IMG/VR virus record: IMGVR_UViG_3300024502_000010
Location: 140,830-204,829 of that record
DNA: 64,000 nt
Strand: one strand, 5' to 3'
Shown here: positions 50,419-57,104 of the stretch, piece after piece
How positions within the stretch are numbered: the first letter of the stretch is position 1
Layout of the letters: each line of letters starts with the position of its first letter
The notes under the pieces: generated by a model
What the model was told of the DNA's origin: nothing
The model's input: the letters and a program-made list of their open reading frames with translations, nothing else
Database searches by the model: none
Program-made: the position numbers and the translations under genes

Positions 50419-52913
50419 TAGGCAAAAAATAATTCAAGGTTTACTGTTTTTTCAACGCTCCACCCAATTGCATCAAGAATGATTTTGAGTGGCTCTAGAA
50501 ATGCTTTCTCAAATTGTAGTTCATAGTCTATGTATTTGTCAAGATTAAGTTCCTTTGGAAATTCCTGAATGAAAGAAATAATATTTTCATGAATACTATT
50601 AGGTTTCTTCAGATAGATAAACTTAATTTTTTCCCCATTTTGGATAAGTGAATACTTATTTGTAAGTTTATTTTGTTTAATGTAATGATTAAAGAGAAGT
50701 GCTCCACGAATATGAATTGGAGTTCCCTTGATATAAATTTGAGACGAAGACTGATACTTAACTACATCAGAGGCAGAGCGAGGGAATGAAATTTGCTCTG
50801 GTGGGAGGTTTTTAAATTCTTTGCGAGCATTCTCAATAAAATCAATTACTTCATCTTCTGTTCCACTCATCATAAGTTTTAATGCATCCTTAATCATTTT
50901 GCGACAAGGAGCTGGAGTAGAAGATTTAACAGCTTCAATACCCATCATTTTCAGTTTAGGTTCTTCATAGCGAACACCCTCACTATCCCAAACGTTAAGA
51001 ATGTATCGTTTCTTAGCGGTCCAAATTCCACGGTCTGCAATGTTCTCCCGCTTCATTTGCATTTTTTGATCATATGCATTTACATAGTCCGCCAGTTCTT
51101 GGTAAGAACTTTCAATATATTTTTCAAGTTCCAACGAAGCGACCTTATCAAGGAACGAAACAACGCTTTCAGTAGTTTTCTCTCTTCCTTTGAATACAGT
51201 TTCAACCAAAGGACCCATATTAAGATAAATGGAATCAGTATCTGAAGCAATAACATAATCTACATTATCTGTTTTAAGAATTTTATTGAGGTAAGAATTC
51301 ATTTTACCTTCAATCCAACGAATAGAAACCTGACCACTTAAAGTAATTGCTTCAGCATTTTCAAGTTTGTAATAACGGAAATACTGATTACCAATCGCAC
51401 CATAAGCAGAGTTCAAAGAAATCTTCTTTGCCATCTGAATATTATTACAACGAGCAATCTCTTTTACAAGTTCCTTGTTCTTAGTCTTCTCATATTCTTT
51501 TTTCGCTTCAATCATTTTCTTCTTGAAGATTACTCGGTCTTGATACATTTTTTCCATTAGTTCAGGAAGAAATCCACGAACGTCTTTGCGGAACATTGCA
51601 CCATTTGCACATACTGCATAATCTTTATAGAGTTCAAAACTGATTTCTTGATTCAGAATTTTATCAACAGTTGCTGTGGGATGCCTTTCATCCACCAGAG
51701 TTTCTGGTGAGATGTTATATTGCATAATCAAGTGTGGATAAAGTGAATTAAGGTCAAAGTTTACAACCCAATCATACTTTCCAGGAATTGGTTCTTTTAC
51801 ATAAGCACCAGCATACTTTTCATTTTTTTGCGTTTTATTTCTTGGCGGAATTACAATGTTTCTTTTCTTAAGATAATTGTAGATGATGTTGTCCCACATC
51901 CGAACTTGATAGAACACATCGGCATAATTTACTTTGGCATCATATGCCATCGTAAGTGCCAACTCAATCAGTTTCATCTTATCTTCTAAACGGTCAACAA
52001 GTTCTACGTCAACGATGTTGTACTCAATAAATTTCTGCCAACCTTGGGTATAGAAATCTTTGAAGGTATCAAACTCAGAGTGGTCAAGTTTCTTCTGACC
52101 AAGTTCTACCTCAGCAATATAATCAAGACGATATGATTCCTGTGCCTTATAAGTAAACTTCTTATAAAGATCAAGATAGTCAAGTTGAGTCATTCCACCC
52201 ACATCAAATGTGGTGTGTTTGCGTCCATTAATAAACACTTCACCTTCTGTGACAAGTCCCCAATTAGAAAAACGTTTCATCAGTTTTTCGCCAAGAACAC
52301 GATTCAGACGCTTGCAGATATAAGGAATATCATATAATTGAATATTCCAACCAGTCACAACATCTGGAACATCAATCATCCAATAATTAATAAAATTATT
52401 GAGAAGTTCATATTCAGATGGGCAGTGATGATACGTTAAGTCACTACGATTATGCTTGAAAGGTCGAACCCCCCAAGTAATAATTTTTTTAGTTGTATAA
52501 TCTTGAATTGTAATTGCAAGGATTTCTTCGGAACAAGATTCTACATCAGGGAATCCCTGCTCCGAAGCAACCTCAATGTCCAGAGTTACAAGTTTAATTT
52601 TATTGATATCAAACTTAATTTCATCCTCCGAATATTTTTCAGAGATGTATTGATAGATATATCGATCATTTCCATAGATCTCAAATCCATCAACTTCATC
52701 ATATTTTTTATAGAACTCTCGACAGTCCTTTACTGTTCCAGGATTAATTGGTTCTACCGATTCTCCACTTAATGTTCTATACTTAGAATCTTTTTTAGTT
52801 TTTACAAAGAGAGTTGGAAAGAACTCATCTCTTGTCTCAAATCTTTTACCATTTTCTACTCCACGAACCAAAAACTGATTTCCAATCAATTGAACATTAG
52901 TGTAAAATCTCAT
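50418..52913 (-). CDS. 43: Family B DNA polymerase
   Basis: DIEV exonuclease, [21 protein letters not shown]. Confidence 0.98.
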
Positions 52914-53176
52914 TCTTTAATCAAGTCCTCATATTTTTCAAGTAGAGTTGGAGTTGGATCAACAAGTGTTAGAATCTTATCCGAACTCATCATAAACGAA
53001 TCTTGTTTTGTATATCCCATCAAAAAAGGTTCTAAAACTTTCTGAGAACCATCTCTTATTAAGAAAGGTTTGATAAGTTTACAATCAGGTTCTCCAATAT
53101 CAGCGCCTACTTCTTCAATCTGACTTATCAGAATTTGATTGTTCAGTAGAACTATTACTTTGGTTATCGTTTCCAT
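52910..53176 (-). CDS. Small Sm-like beta protein
   Basis: 88 aa ORF. Confidence 0.65.
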   Translation of the reverse strand: METITKVIVLLNNQILISQIEEVGADIGEPDCKLIKPFLIRDGSQKVLEPFLMGYTKQDSFMMSSDKILTLVDPTPTLLEKYEDLIKE

Positions 53177-53510
53177 AGTTTATAACATCGTTTAAATACA
53201 TATCTTTCAGTTTATCACTTGGATTGACCATAGTGACCACCCATTCCTTTGTTAAAGGAATAACACTATCTTTAGATAGTGGCATCCACGGGAATAAGGT
53301 AACTCTAAAAGAAGCTTTTGAAGGGTCTTCTTTCATTTCCTCTTCATCAAACTTTTCTGGAACATTTGATGGGGGTGTCATTTTAACAACGCATGGTTTA
53401 TTCAAGAAATATCCAACCATAACTGGATTTTCTTCGTCACCAACTACCATTTCTTTTACATCTGCAATCAAGTCTTCACCAGACTTAAGCAACATTAGTC
53501 TTACAGTCAT
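53115..53510 (-). CDS. Small Sm-like beta protein
   Basis: MTVRLMLLKSGEDLIADV; promoter TTGACT-17-TACAAT. Confidence 0.7.
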   Translation of the reverse strand: MTVRLMLLKSGEDLIADVKEMVVGDEENPVMVGYFLNKPCVVKMTPPSNVPEKFDEEEMKEDPSKASFRVTLFPWMPLSKDSVIPLTKEWVVTMVNPSDKLKDMYLNDVINYGNDNQSNSSTEQSNSDKSD

Positions 53511-53607
53511 TTTTACTCCATACCTCTTACTATTGTAGCAACAAAAAAAGGAGGAGTCAACCTGGATTTTGCCAGGTGCTCCTCGCGCCGACGATATTCA
53601 ATACTAT

Positions 53608-53769
53608 TTATTCCCCACCGTCACCATCTCCATTACCACCAGCACTTGAACGACTTCTTACAGGAACTGCTTTTCCTTTTGGAACTTGCTTTTGTTTTCC
53701 TTGAGAATAAACAGTATGTGGGATTGCTCCCTTATATGCAATTGTTTTGAACTCGTCAAAAGATTTCAT
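53608..53769 (-). CDS. 53 aa basic protein with CTS-like N-terminus
   Basis: MKSFDEFKTIAYKGAIPH...; CTAAATA upstream; absent from the ORF track. Confidence 0.6.
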   Translation of the reverse strand: MKSFDEFKTIAYKGAIPHTVYSQGKQKQVPKGKAVPVRSRSSAGGNGDGDGGE

Positions 53770-53783
53770 TTTTTTATTTTTAT

Positions 53784-54218
53784 TTAGAGATAATCCTTTC
53801 GTGCATGGTGCTCAGGAACAATCTTACCAAGAACAACGGTTAGCAATCCATCCTCGAATAGAACTTCTTTAATGGTTGTATCATCTGATAATGTCCATGC
53901 TCTCTTGAAAGATCGTTGAGCCAATCCCTTATGGATGTAGTTGGTATCGGACTCCCTATCTTCCTTCTGTCCTTCGACAAAAAGTTTTCCATACTCCGTG
54001 TATACATGTACTTCCTCCTTCTTAAATCCGGCAAGTGCAAGTTCGAGTCGTGATTCTACATTACTAACTTGAACAAGGTTATATGGGGGGTAATTAGAAG
54101 TTGTTTCATGAAGATTAAATAGACGATCAAAATATTCATCCATTCCAATACTATTGCGGTTAATCCTTTCCAATAGGGCAGGAAGATCCGACGCGGTATA
54201 TCGCATGAGGTTAGTCAT
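53784..54218 (-). CDS. hsp20: Small heat shock protein
   Basis: YPPYNL, LALAGF, HKGLAQRSF.R, DGLLTV. Confidence 0.96.
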   Translation of the reverse strand: MTNLMRYTASDLPALLERINRNSIGMDEYFDRLFNLHETTSNYPPYNLVQVSNVESRLELALAGFKKEEVHVYTEYGKLFVEGQKEDRESDTNYIHKGLAQRSFKRAWTLSDDTTIKEVLFEDGLLTVVLGKIVPEHHARKDYL

Positions 54219-54285
54219 TATAGTAGCTCCTTTGAAAGCGAGGTTTGATTTTGTGATCCCAATAAGGCGATCATTAATAATTTAT
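54219..54285 (-). promoter_or_regulatory. ROSE-like RNA thermometer in hsp20 5' UTR
   Basis: CUCGCU-UUCAA-AGGAG pairs the SD with a bulged G; upstream hairpin UGAUC..GAUCA. Confidence 0.5.
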
Positions 54286-54302
54286 AACAGTTTTTATTAT
54301 TT

Positions 54303-54710
54303 TTAAAGTGTGGTTTCTACTACATTATTCTTAACTGGTCTTCCAAATGTTCCAGGAGGAAACTTCATACCTTTGTTCCAAGCAGGTTTCCCCTTCATAG
54401 ACATACCGGTTTTCTGTCTTGACGCTTTATCTCTTTTTGATCCAGAAGTACCTTCACCACCATCGGTTTTATTAACCAATACACCACCACTATCTTTTTT
54501 ACCCCAAAACTTTATGAGTGCTATTTCCAAAGATAATGCTTCTTGTTCTGTTAAGTTTTCTTTTATTCTTACTATTCTATCTCTATCAGGAGGTCGTTGA
54601 GCTAATCCTAACTTTCTTTTATTTGTGTCTCTAAATCCAGAACCTTTCCCAATGTAGTAAGGAGAATATCTATCTTCACGCAAATAAGCGTAAACGTAAT
54701 ACCTTTCCAT
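54303..54710 (-). mobile_element. GIY-YIG/NUMOD3 homing endonuclease
   Basis: YYVYAY...PYYIGKG, E..LI, N.TDGGEG, KGKPAWNKG. Confidence 0.85.
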
Positions 54711-54806
54711 CTGCTTTGTTTGTGGTTATAGTTATTTATAAAAGAAAAGGAGCATTTCTGCCCCCAATCCTTTGCTTGAATAACCACAAACAAGCACTAA
54801 TATTTA

Positions 54807-55355
54807 TCAACCAATAATACTCTCTCTCCACTCTTCGCTCATATTCACCATAATTGCTTCTGCTGCTTCTGGTGTTTCAGCATATCCTTCATCAAGTAAG
54901 TGTGAGAGGATAATATCGTAAAGGTCAAAGTTTTCTCCAATCTCACCCATCGCTTGTTGCTTACGAAGTTTCTTAGGATTTTTGGTTACTGTTCCAGAAC
55001 CTTCTGTATGTTTTTTATATTTTGGATCATAAGGAGAAAGTCGTCTAGATCTTGTTGCTGCTGCTTCTCTGTTTCTGTCTCTATCCGATTGAGTCATTCC
55101 AGTTCTCATATGCCCACCAGCACCAAAAGTACCTCCCCCCTTATGTCCAAGAGATTGATGTCGTTTTATAGTTTCTGGTTCTTCTTCTCTTGATCGTGCT
55201 TTATTTTTAAGTTTCCTATACATCTCCTGTCTTTCGGGAGTTTGTCCCTTTTTTTGCCTTTCAAGTTTTGCTGCTCTATCAGCAACATCTCCTGAGGCAC
55301 CCTCAACAACTTCCATATATGCTTCTTGAAGACTACGAAATTCTTGCGCGTCCAT
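54807..55355 (-). CDS. Modular putative head-internal protein
   Basis: TATAAATA upstream; shares two modules with 46198-47403. Confidence 0.7.
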   Translation of the reverse strand: MDAQEFRSLQEAYMEVVEGASGDVADRAAKLERQKKGQTPERQEMYRKLKNKARSREEEPETIKRHQSLGHKGGGTFGAGGHMRTGMTQSDRDRNREAAATRSRRLSPYDPKYKKHTEGSGTVTKNPKKLRKQQAMGEIGENFDLYDIILSHLLDEGYAETPEAAEAIMVNMSEEWRESIIG

Positions 55356-55481
55356 TTTTAATAATACTTTTTAGGTATTTATAAAATACAAGAAACGAAA
55401 AAAAGAGGTATCGGCAAAACCGAACCTCTTTTTAGGGTGTTCCGACTTTTGTAGAGTGCCGCACGAATGGCACACTACTAT

Positions 55482-55919
55482 TTATTCGGTTTCTACTGCT
55501 TTTCCTTTCTTACCAATATTATACTTCTGTTCTAAAATCCAATCTCCCTTATCCTTATAAGCAAGGACTTTGATTTGATTCAGGGGAGCAATATCATTTA
55601 CAGAATCTGGTTTAATAACTGTAATTAGACCCCAATCAGCAAGAAGACGGACGATTCTATTTCTTCTCTGCACATCATTAACAGTAAGATTGGCATGTTT
55701 ACCATCAAGAGCAAATAATTCTTTAAAGTGAACAATATAATACCTACCTTGCTTATGTAAAATATGGCAAGACTGATAGAGTTTTTTCTCCTTACGTGAA
55801 GCAACTCCGATACGGGTCAGGGTTTCACGAACTTTAAGGAAGTCGTCAGGTTCATTAAGAATTACTTCTACCATTTGGTCCTGAGACCATTCAACAGTAG
55901 GTTCTACCGTAGTAGTCAT
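55482..55919 (-). CDS. regA: Translational repressor
   Basis: DDFLKVRETLTRIG, LYQSCHILHKQG.YYIVHFKE. Confidence 0.97.
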   Translation of the reverse strand: MTTTVEPTVEWSQDQMVEVILNEPDDFLKVRETLTRIGVASRKEKKLYQSCHILHKQGRYYIVHFKELFALDGKHANLTVNDVQRRNRIVRLLADWGLITVIKPDSVNDIAPLNQIKVLAYKDKGDWILEQKYNIGKKGKAVETE

Positions 55920-56284
55920 TTTTTTCCTCCAATATCAAGTCGTTTTTTGATGAAAGTTAGTTGTTCTTTTGTCAGGATTTTCAGTGCTTGAGATGCTTTT
56001 TCATTACTATAACCATAGTATTGTTTAACACATTCTAAGTCTGTAACCTTATCCTTTCGGAGCCAGGGAGAAAATCTCTTCTTTTTCCTCAAACTATTTA
56101 GATAAAACGAATATTGCATATCCTTGGAAAGATGATGATGCATATTCATTTCATTAGAAAAAAGAACACAATCAATGTGACCAGATAAACACCTATTAAT
56201 AATAAAAGGTGGATATGAACTAATATCTTCGGATAAATCTTCTTTTGTAAAATTAATTGAGTTGAGCCAATCTTTGAGTTCCAT
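55916..56284 (-). CDS. 62: Clamp loader small subunit
   Basis: YPPFIINRCLS, RFSPW, YYGYS. Confidence 0.9.
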   Translation of the reverse strand: MELKDWLNSINFTKEDLSEDISSYPPFIINRCLSGHIDCVLFSNEMNMHHHLSKDMQYSFYLNSLRKKKRFSPWLRKDKVTDLECVKQYYGYSNEKASQALKILTKEQLTFIKKRLDIGGKK

Positions 56285-57104
56285 AATTAAATAGCAGCAA
56301 TTCTTTTCTATCTTTTTGCTCTCGCATATATTCACCAACAGAACGCATCGTATAAGTCAAATCAAACTCGGCAGCGTTCCAATCTTTAAATCGGTCTTTT
56401 ACGAGTTGGTCTGAGTTATAACTAATCAATTGATGCATATTAACACGAAAATCACAATCAGCAGCAAACTTATCATGATCGAATCCTTTGTGCATTGATC
56501 CCTTACGCCCATAGAGATTATCCTTAATATCATAAGGAGGATCGAGATACACAAAAGCAGTAGTGTCTCCATCCAAAAGATAATCGTATGAATAGTTAGT
56601 TATACGCCAATGCTTAATTATCTTAGAATACTCAGGCAGTTTTTCAATCCCACGCAAACTGAAGTTGTTGTTGGATGCCTGTGGTGAAAATGATGAACTC
56701 TCCGTGAGACCACTGAAACTACACTTATTGACAACATAGAAAGCCACAGCACGATCAATGCTTGGCAAATCCTTGTCATTTACTTGCTCCTTTGCTTTAA
56801 GAAAAAGTTCTTTTGCCAGGACCGGAGTATTATTTGTCGTCTTAAGATCTACAAGTTTATCTTTAATATCCACCCCAAACATCTGGAGTTGTTGCCAGAA
56901 GTTTACAAGAGGTTCATATAAATCATTCACCCAAATATCTAGGTTAGGATACTTCTTTGTGATATAAATCGCAACACTTCCACCACCAAGAAATGGTTCA
57001 CGGAACTCACGATAATCACGAAGGTCTGGAAAGTATGGTCCCATCTTTTCACATGCGCGGGATTTACCACCAGGATATCTTAGAGGTGTTTTAAGAGATT
57101 TCAT
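56253..57104 (-). CDS. dam: DNA adenine methyltransferase (Dam/D12 class)
   Basis: LRYPGGKS, EPFLGGGS, YLDPPY. Confidence 0.93.
   Translation of the reverse strand: MKSLKTPLRYPGGKSRACEKMGPYFPDLRDYREFREPFLGGGSVAIYITKKYPNLDIWVNDLYEPLVNFWQQLQMFGVDIKDKLVDLKTTNNTPVLAKELFLKAKEQVNDKDLPSIDRAVAFYVVNKCSFSGLTESSSFSPQASNNNFSLRGIEKLPEYSKIIKHWRITNYSYDYLLDGDTTAFVYLDPPYDIKDNLYGRKGSMHKGFDHDKFAADCDFRVNMHQLISYNSDQLVKDRFKDWNAAEFDLTYTMRSVGEYMREQKDRKELLLFNYGTQRLAQLN

Follow-up and report, generated by a model that had tools for sequence, protein, structure and literature searches.

ROSE elements are RNA thermometers in the leaders of small heat-shock protein (sHSP) genes, in which an anti-Shine-Dalgarno motif U(U/C)GCU pairs with the Shine-Dalgarno (SD) sequence around a bulged G and the SD is released by melting. 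The classical elements of alpha- and gamma-proteobacteria (Bradyrhizobium ROSE1, E. coli ibpA; Rfam ROSE, RF00435) control class A sHSP genes and comprise 3-4 hairpins over 70-120 nt, with a long thermosensing hairpin that often includes the AUG (PMC3669281). A shorter form was described in front of Pseudomonas ibpA (Krajewski et al. 2013, PMC3669281), where leaders of 61-62 nt fold into only two hairpins, a G+C-rich hairpin I and, after a single-stranded A-rich linker, a hairpin II in which U(U/C)GCU pairs imperfectly with the SD with a bulged G, and leave the AUG unpaired. For those leaders, reporter assays (4.3- and 6.4-fold induction from 25 to 42 C), probing, and toeprinting demonstrated a thermometer whose hairpin II alone suffices. 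Other cyanobacterial sHSP thermometers and that of Synechocystis hsp17 are cited in the same work. These act in the host phylum of cyanophages and also regulate translation of a small heat-shock gene through a short and weak SD hairpin, but they are single hairpins without the U(U/C)GCU/bulged-G signature. Among phages, the lambda cIII mRNA responds to temperature through RNA structure, but it does so by means of two alternative structures that favor translation at lower temperature, and it is unrelated to the element described here in sequence, in gene, and in direction of response.

Here, we examined a 64,000-nt stretch of DNA (the window; positions 140,830 to 204,829 of the 204,829-bp virus record IMGVR_UViG_3300024502_000010), for which a sequence-only reading had proposed a ROSE-like thermometer upstream of a phage small heat-shock gene. 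We found that the ~60-base leader of this gene is predicted to fold into the same two hairpins as the Pseudomonas ibpA elements, with the ribosome-binding site concealed, and that this arrangement is conserved in front of hsp20 in hundreds of phages. These viruses therefore probably carry their own temperature switch for a chaperone. Our searches of the literature found no paper linking hsp20 of cyanophages, or of phages in general, to an RNA thermometer, in agreement with the earlier statement that no description in a cyanophage was known, and a 2024 review states that temperature-responsive viral RNA structures remain speculative. The mechanism and the family are thus known, whereas the carrier (phages, and a core cyanophage gene), the minimal sensor helix, and the breadth of conservation are new.

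The hsp20 leader of a riverine T4-like cyanophage

The window derives from a T4-like cyanophage, with genes for gp43 DNA polymerase and RegA nearby, whose closest isolate is the freshwater Synechococcus phage S-SRM01. The same DNA occurs in riverine metagenomes and metatranscriptomes. The region 52500-56500 is present in six riverine metatranscriptome runs (95-98% of sampled words), as contigs that carry no information on 5' ends, strand, or expression level. Unitig breaks at 53906-53935 and 54118-54147 inside hsp20 probably reflect co-occurring strains, and one record skips 53100-53541, suggesting a variant that lacks one of two DUF6561-like ORFs. These two adjacent, overlapping, paralogous ORFs (52910-53176 and 53115-53510, minus strand; PF20198; PHROGs 483 and 431) lie between hsp20 and the DNA polymerase gene. 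On the minus strand, the ORF at 53784..54218 (genetic code 11) encodes a 144-aa Hsp20 (Pfam PF00011, E 1.4e-13; PHROG 432, E 4e-56), for which the best NCBIfam models are IbpA (79.7 bits) and IbpB (77 bits), both below the equivalog cutoffs.

The 84-nt intergenic region upstream (54219..54302) opens, on the RNA strand, with a promoter-like box at 54279..54289, consisting of TG (54289-54288) followed by TATAAA (54286-54281), or TATAAATT at 54286-54279. This box ends 5-7 nt before hairpin I, such that the likely transcript start, inferred from sequence alone, is at about 54275-54273. A simple sigma-70 scan does not call the box because its position 6 is A. Hairpin I (54254..54273), UGAUC(G)CC-UUAUU-GGGAUCA, pairs U54273-C54266 with G54260-A54254 in 7 bp with G54268 bulged, and it folded in every minimum free energy (MFE) run, consistent with a predicted 5'-terminal stable stem. 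It is followed by a CA-rich linker at 54243..54253 (CAAAAUCAAAC) that was unpaired in all folds. In hairpin II (54227..54242), the putative thermosensor, the anti-SD arm C54242 U54241 C54240 G54239 C54238 U54237 can pair with the SD arm A54231 G54230 G54229 A54228 G54227 as 5 bp across the loop UUCAA (54236-54232), with G54239 bulged, and its UCGCU fits the U(U/C)GCU signature. An 8-nt spacer (CUACUAUA) and the AUG (54218-54216), together at 54216..54226, are unpaired, as is the AUG of the Pseudomonas ibpA elements. The observation made from the sequence alone therefore held in every particular.

On this single copy, thermodynamic folding was not significant, with z-scores of -0.75 to -1.6 relative to shuffled sequences. 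Moreover, the MFE structure used an alternative register, GCUUU/GGAGC (-3.3 kcal/mol at 37 C), rather than the ROSE-like register (-1.3 kcal/mol). This fold had been named beforehand as one that would count against the thermometer, and for the window copy that condition does apply. It is, however, not the conserved fold: It cannot form in leaders of the AGGAC and AGGUCU classes (see below) and loses its closing G-C wherever AGGAG is followed by A, U, or G. It may coexist with the ROSE register in AGGAGC leaders such as that of the window, and either register hides the SD. The pattern CTCGCT-N2-10-AGGAG occurred once in the 64 kb against 0.07 expected. The case rests on comparative data and not on the fold of the window copy.

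The leader appears to have survived a nearby insertion. A 135-aa ORF (54303-54710, minus strand) with a GIY-YIG-like N-terminus and a weak PHROG homing-endonuclease match (phrog_314, E 4.7e-5; no Pfam or NCBIfam hit) sits between a terminator-like hairpin and the hsp20 promoter and leader. Among the close relatives (hsp20 loci that we numbered with an L), L004-L080 have the terminator directly followed by the promoter and leader, and only L001-L003 share the ORF, which is probably a lineage-specific mobile insertion that left the leader intact. An inverted repeat of about 18 nt (54711-54729 and 54781-54797) brackets the terminator-like stem (54748-54765, minus strand) upstream of this ORF. It produced a spurious Rfam MIR827 hit (30.2 bits) and may mark the insertion boundary.

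Conservation and covariation of the two hairpins

We collected hsp20 loci from IMG/VR in four scans (80 close relatives and 240 further loci) and from 20 isolates spanning the Kyanoviridae, whose Hsp20 proteins are 40-73% identical to that of the window. In nearly all of them, the gene was preceded by the same module: usually a rho-independent terminator of the upstream gene, then a -10-like or T4-late-like box (TATAAT, TTAAAT, or TATAAATA) at a fixed distance from hairpin I, hairpin I itself starting 5-8 nt later, the CA-rich linker (conserved as ACA(A/C)AAYACAAA), and the anti-SD arm, a variable A/U loop, and the SD. The spacer sequence between the SD and the AUG differed between clades. In the ACG-2014e clade (L097, L182-L261), the SD-like AAGGAC abuts the AUG (0-1 nt spacing), which is unusual for SD-led initiation, and part of this clade carries an extra G+C-rich hairpin plus a U-run between the -10-like box and hairpin I. 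One relative (L020:1437-1503) is a natural deletion variant in which the regA stop codon is followed directly by the 3' half of hairpin I, such that the promoter and the 5' arm are gone while the linker and hairpin II are intact.

A covariance model built from 141 leaders (R1, in which the -10-like box forms positions 1-8) gave exactly one hit in each of 100 diverse sources. It hit the window at 54217-54286 with 54.5 bits (E 3e-15), the one real hit in the whole 205-kb genome. On the model-based alignment, 95.3% of cells were paired, against 82.3% in shuffles and 32-64% when the partner was slid. In hairpin I, five of seven pairs showed double compensatory changes in 100 diverse leaders, for example, GGAUGCC/GGGUCC, GGUUGCC/GGGACC, GAAUGCC/GGGUUC, and GUCGCC/GGGAC, while the bulged G and the C-G pair next to it were invariant. 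Hairpin I carries the same Y-G(bulge)-C-C / G-G-R motif as the sensor hairpin, with a bulged G that is invariant from cyanophages to the consensus of the Rfam family ROSE_3, which a mere 5' stabilizer would not need.

For hairpin II, MAFFT and the covariance model both misaligned the 3' arm of one class (AGAY(G)CU), and we therefore used an anchored register count over 238 distinct leaders, which optimizes the loop length and is thus somewhat biased toward pairing. All 238 leaders formed this register with 4-7 bp, with loops that varied in length (4-7 nt) and in sequence. The arms were CUC(G)CU/AGGAG in 131 leaders, GUC(G)CU/AGGAC in 49, UCUC(G)CU/AGGAGA in 23, AGAY(G)CU/AGGUCU in 9, UCUU(G)CU/AGGAGA in 6, and CUU(G)CU/AGGAG, GUU(G)CU/AGGAC, and ACUC(G)CU/AGGAGU in 4 each, the remaining 8 being rare variants of these arms. 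The outer pair was C-G in 175 leaders and G-C in 63, and the next pair was U-A in 227, A-U in 10, and U.G in 1, with no mismatch at either position, while a sixth pair, where present, was U-A or A-U. The pair below the bulge was C-G in 219, U.G in 18, and U-A in 1, the bulged G was invariant, and pairing with AGG(A) was kept in all. In the rare AGAY(G)CU class, the first U of the signature is replaced by A, with a compensating U. On an Hsp20 tree, the pairing classes changed at least 5 times and the C/U below the bulge at least 14 times, and the switches are therefore not one inherited event. In the AGGAC and AGGUCU classes, the energy model itself returned the bulged-G fold as the MFE. By contrast, RNAalifold on the MAFFT alignment recovered only four pairs of hairpin I and did not call hairpin II. 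The predicted probability that the SD is paired at 25 C was 0.92 (median of 248 leaders) against 0.69 for 23 other SD-bearing starts in the window, a comparison that is descriptive only because the leaders are related to one another.

Similarity to ROSE_3 and distribution among phages

A search of the window region against Rfam returned no hit to any ROSE model at E<=10. When related leaders were scanned, however, ROSE_3 (RF02523, 69 positions), the short two-hairpin ibpA-type ROSE element, gave full-length matches exactly on the hsp20 leader of Methylophilales phage Melnitz-3 (34.1 bits, E 4e-4), Agrobacterium jumbo phage Atu_ph07 (28.0), S-SKS1 (27.9), S-SM2 (24.9), L005 (24.7), L120 (22.8), L344 (21.3), S-8S56 (21.1), and L345 (18.9). 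All of these remain below the gathering score of 43 bits, and by that threshold the phage element is not a member of the family. No other family recurred at this site, and neither RF00435 nor the other ROSE models gave any hit at E<=10 in the window region or in 33 related loci. The cmscan alignments placed the phage stems and both bulged Gs on the stems of the model, whose consensus shows a first stem gGAUGCC..GGGUCc with a bulged G, an A-rich linker corresponding to the single-stranded segment between the phage hairpins, and then ACUcGCuGA..UCaGgAG with a bulged G, i.e., the phage architecture plus two extra apical pairs.

The ROSE_3 consensus numbering fits the P. putida ibpA element, including G39 (the bulged residue deleted in the repressed variants), the C36-G53, C40-G50, and G42-C48 pairs, and single-stranded positions 27-33, from which we infer that ROSE_3 represents that family. 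A search for bona fide ROSE_3 members gave no hit in the phage's own genome or, above cutoff, in 14 control genomes, and none in 151 genomes of the class of a misbinned MAG, but it had no positive control and says nothing about absence. Compared with the Pseudomonas elements, hairpin II in the phages stops after the U-A pair and lacks the two upper pairs, including the G-C clamp (G42-C48), its loop is A/U-rich and variable, and the promoter is a phage or sigma-70-like -10 box instead of a sigma-32 promoter. We consider the phage element very probably homologous to the short ROSE-like ibpA thermometers, as a divergent, shortened relative.

R1 found no true copy in 140 sampled genomes of the Prochlorococcus/Synechococcus family: The only real hit was a phage contig in a Prochlorococcus single-cell assembly, next to three weak chance hits without hsp20. 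The element was thus not found in those searched, and so it is not borrowed from the host's own sHSP leader. A scan of bacterial genomes with the single Hsp20 protein returned mostly phage contigs binned into MAGs, and contigs with this cyanophage-type hsp20 and its leader (L342-L345) lie in MAGs labeled Acidibacter, Psychromonas, Thermoplasmata, and Actinomycetota, most likely by misbinning. R1 did find the element upstream of hsp20/ibpB in three non-cyanophages, namely Melnitz-3 (28.2 bits), Atu_ph07 (27.7 bits), and Pseudomonas jumbo phage Callisto (25.0 bits) (L356:305-379, L359:287-361, and L357:297-361), but not in Vibrio phage PWH3a-P1. Plain blastn with a 67-nt leader found one place in each of 306 cyanophage records and, in the records listed, it lies just upstream of hsp20 and is almost always unannotated.

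Inferred thermosensing and alternative readings

The interpretation as a ROSE-like thermometer was supported, in that an IbpA-type sHSP gene, a 3' hairpin holding the SD, a U(U/C)GCU anti-SD, a bulged G, and a stable 5' hairpin are all present and are kept by compensatory changes across cyanophages whose Hsp20 proteins are only ~40% identical. The proposed temperature-gated Hsp20 synthesis remains an inference from homology to the tested Pseudomonas elements. In this view, the hsp20 mRNA would start a few bases before hairpin I, which probably acts as a folding scaffold and/or a 5' end protector, as discussed for Pseudomonas. At low temperature, the closed hairpin II would limit 30S binding, and upon warming this weak, imperfect helix would open while hairpin I stays folded, such that Hsp20 translation would increase with no trans-acting factor needed. 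Such a switch would be portable between hosts, which fits its spread with the gene among unrelated phages. Our analysis establishes the sequence, the conserved and covarying two-hairpin structure, the sequestration of the SD, the specificity to hsp20, and the similarity to ROSE_3, while the transcript start, melting in the physiological range, and the effect on translation are inferred. We place the structural and homology claim at about 0.9 and actual thermosensing at about 0.65-0.7, and the reading as a whole at roughly 0.7.

The main alternative, which we consider unlikely, is a constitutive expression tuner, where hairpin I stabilizes the 5' end of the mRNA and hairpin II merely damps translation, with no meaningful temperature response in the 10-30 C range of the hosts and the element an inherited ROSE relic. 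Hairpin II has only 5-6 bp and lacks the clamp whose opening abolished thermoregulation in P. putida. Its predicted stability at 37 C is -1.3 to -4.2 kcal/mol against -7.8 for the ROSE_3 consensus (about 4-6 kcal/mol weaker), and it may therefore be largely open or only a mild attenuator. Nearest-neighbor modeling gave -3.0 (20 C) to -0.8 (42 C) kcal/mol for the ROSE register of the window copy, and modeled SD pairing fell only from 0.94 to 0.85 between 15 and 45 C. In addition, phage early/late promoters replace the heat-shock promoter. A weaker helix is what a sensor working at 10-30 C would need, but it is equally what a leaky relic would look like. Speaking against a mere tuner, purifying selection keeps the bulged G and the imperfect pairing, rather than a perfect or absent stem, in all 238 leaders and through several compensatory switches, which is the hallmark of a helix tuned to be marginal.

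A protein-binding site, either an operator for the phage translational repressor RegA or a DNA Pho box for host PhoB, is very unlikely, even though regA is the upstream neighbor of hsp20 in many of these genomes and the motif AAACTCGCTTAAATA of S-PM2d hsp20 was picked computationally as a Pho box (PMC10976474). In S-PM2d, that fragment did not bind PhoB in EMSA and hsp20 was not phosphate-regulated (PMC10976474), and we reject the Pho-box reading on these data. The compensatory changes indicate selection on RNA pairing and not on a fixed recognition sequence. T4 RegA sites lie in the SD-AUG spacer, which is not conserved between clades here, and RegA targets many genes, whereas the motif is unique to hsp20 in the window and genome, although binding of a protein to the structured RNA is not excluded. 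Least likely is the absence of any RNA element, with conservation reflecting only a promoter plus a strong ribosome-binding site and chance pairings. The nonsignificant single-sequence statistics and the RNAalifold result would fit this, but hairpin I and the anti-SD arm have no promoter or ribosome-binding role and yet are conserved and covary, the similarity to a curated thermometer family covers both stems, and the slid-partner controls collapse.

A further possibility, which we regard as tentative, is that a self-contained ROSE_3-type thermosensor moves together with an IbpA-like hsp20 as a gene-plus-switch cassette among phages whose hosts span Cyanobacteria and the Alpha-, Beta-, and Gammaproteobacteria. 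In cyanomyoviruses, where hsp20 is a core gene, the cassette would have become a near-universal regulatory RNA with a sensor helix shortened to melt in the 10-30 C range of surface waters. Phage chaperone output, and perhaps infection success, would then track water temperature independently of host regulators.

hsp20 is one of the few cyanophage core genes with a named but untested role (PMC3037559), and its leader turns out to be a conserved, unannotated structured RNA in several hundred sequenced cyanophages. This explains a sequence previously mispredicted as a Pho box in S-PM2d and supplies a covariance-model seed that current Rfam thresholds miss. If the leader senses temperature, it would provide a handle on what phage Hsp20 is for, would extend ROSE-type thermometers from proteobacterial chromosomes to viruses and to a cooler working range, and would give a concrete, factor-independent mechanism by which abundant marine and freshwater viruses adjust protein synthesis to temperature.
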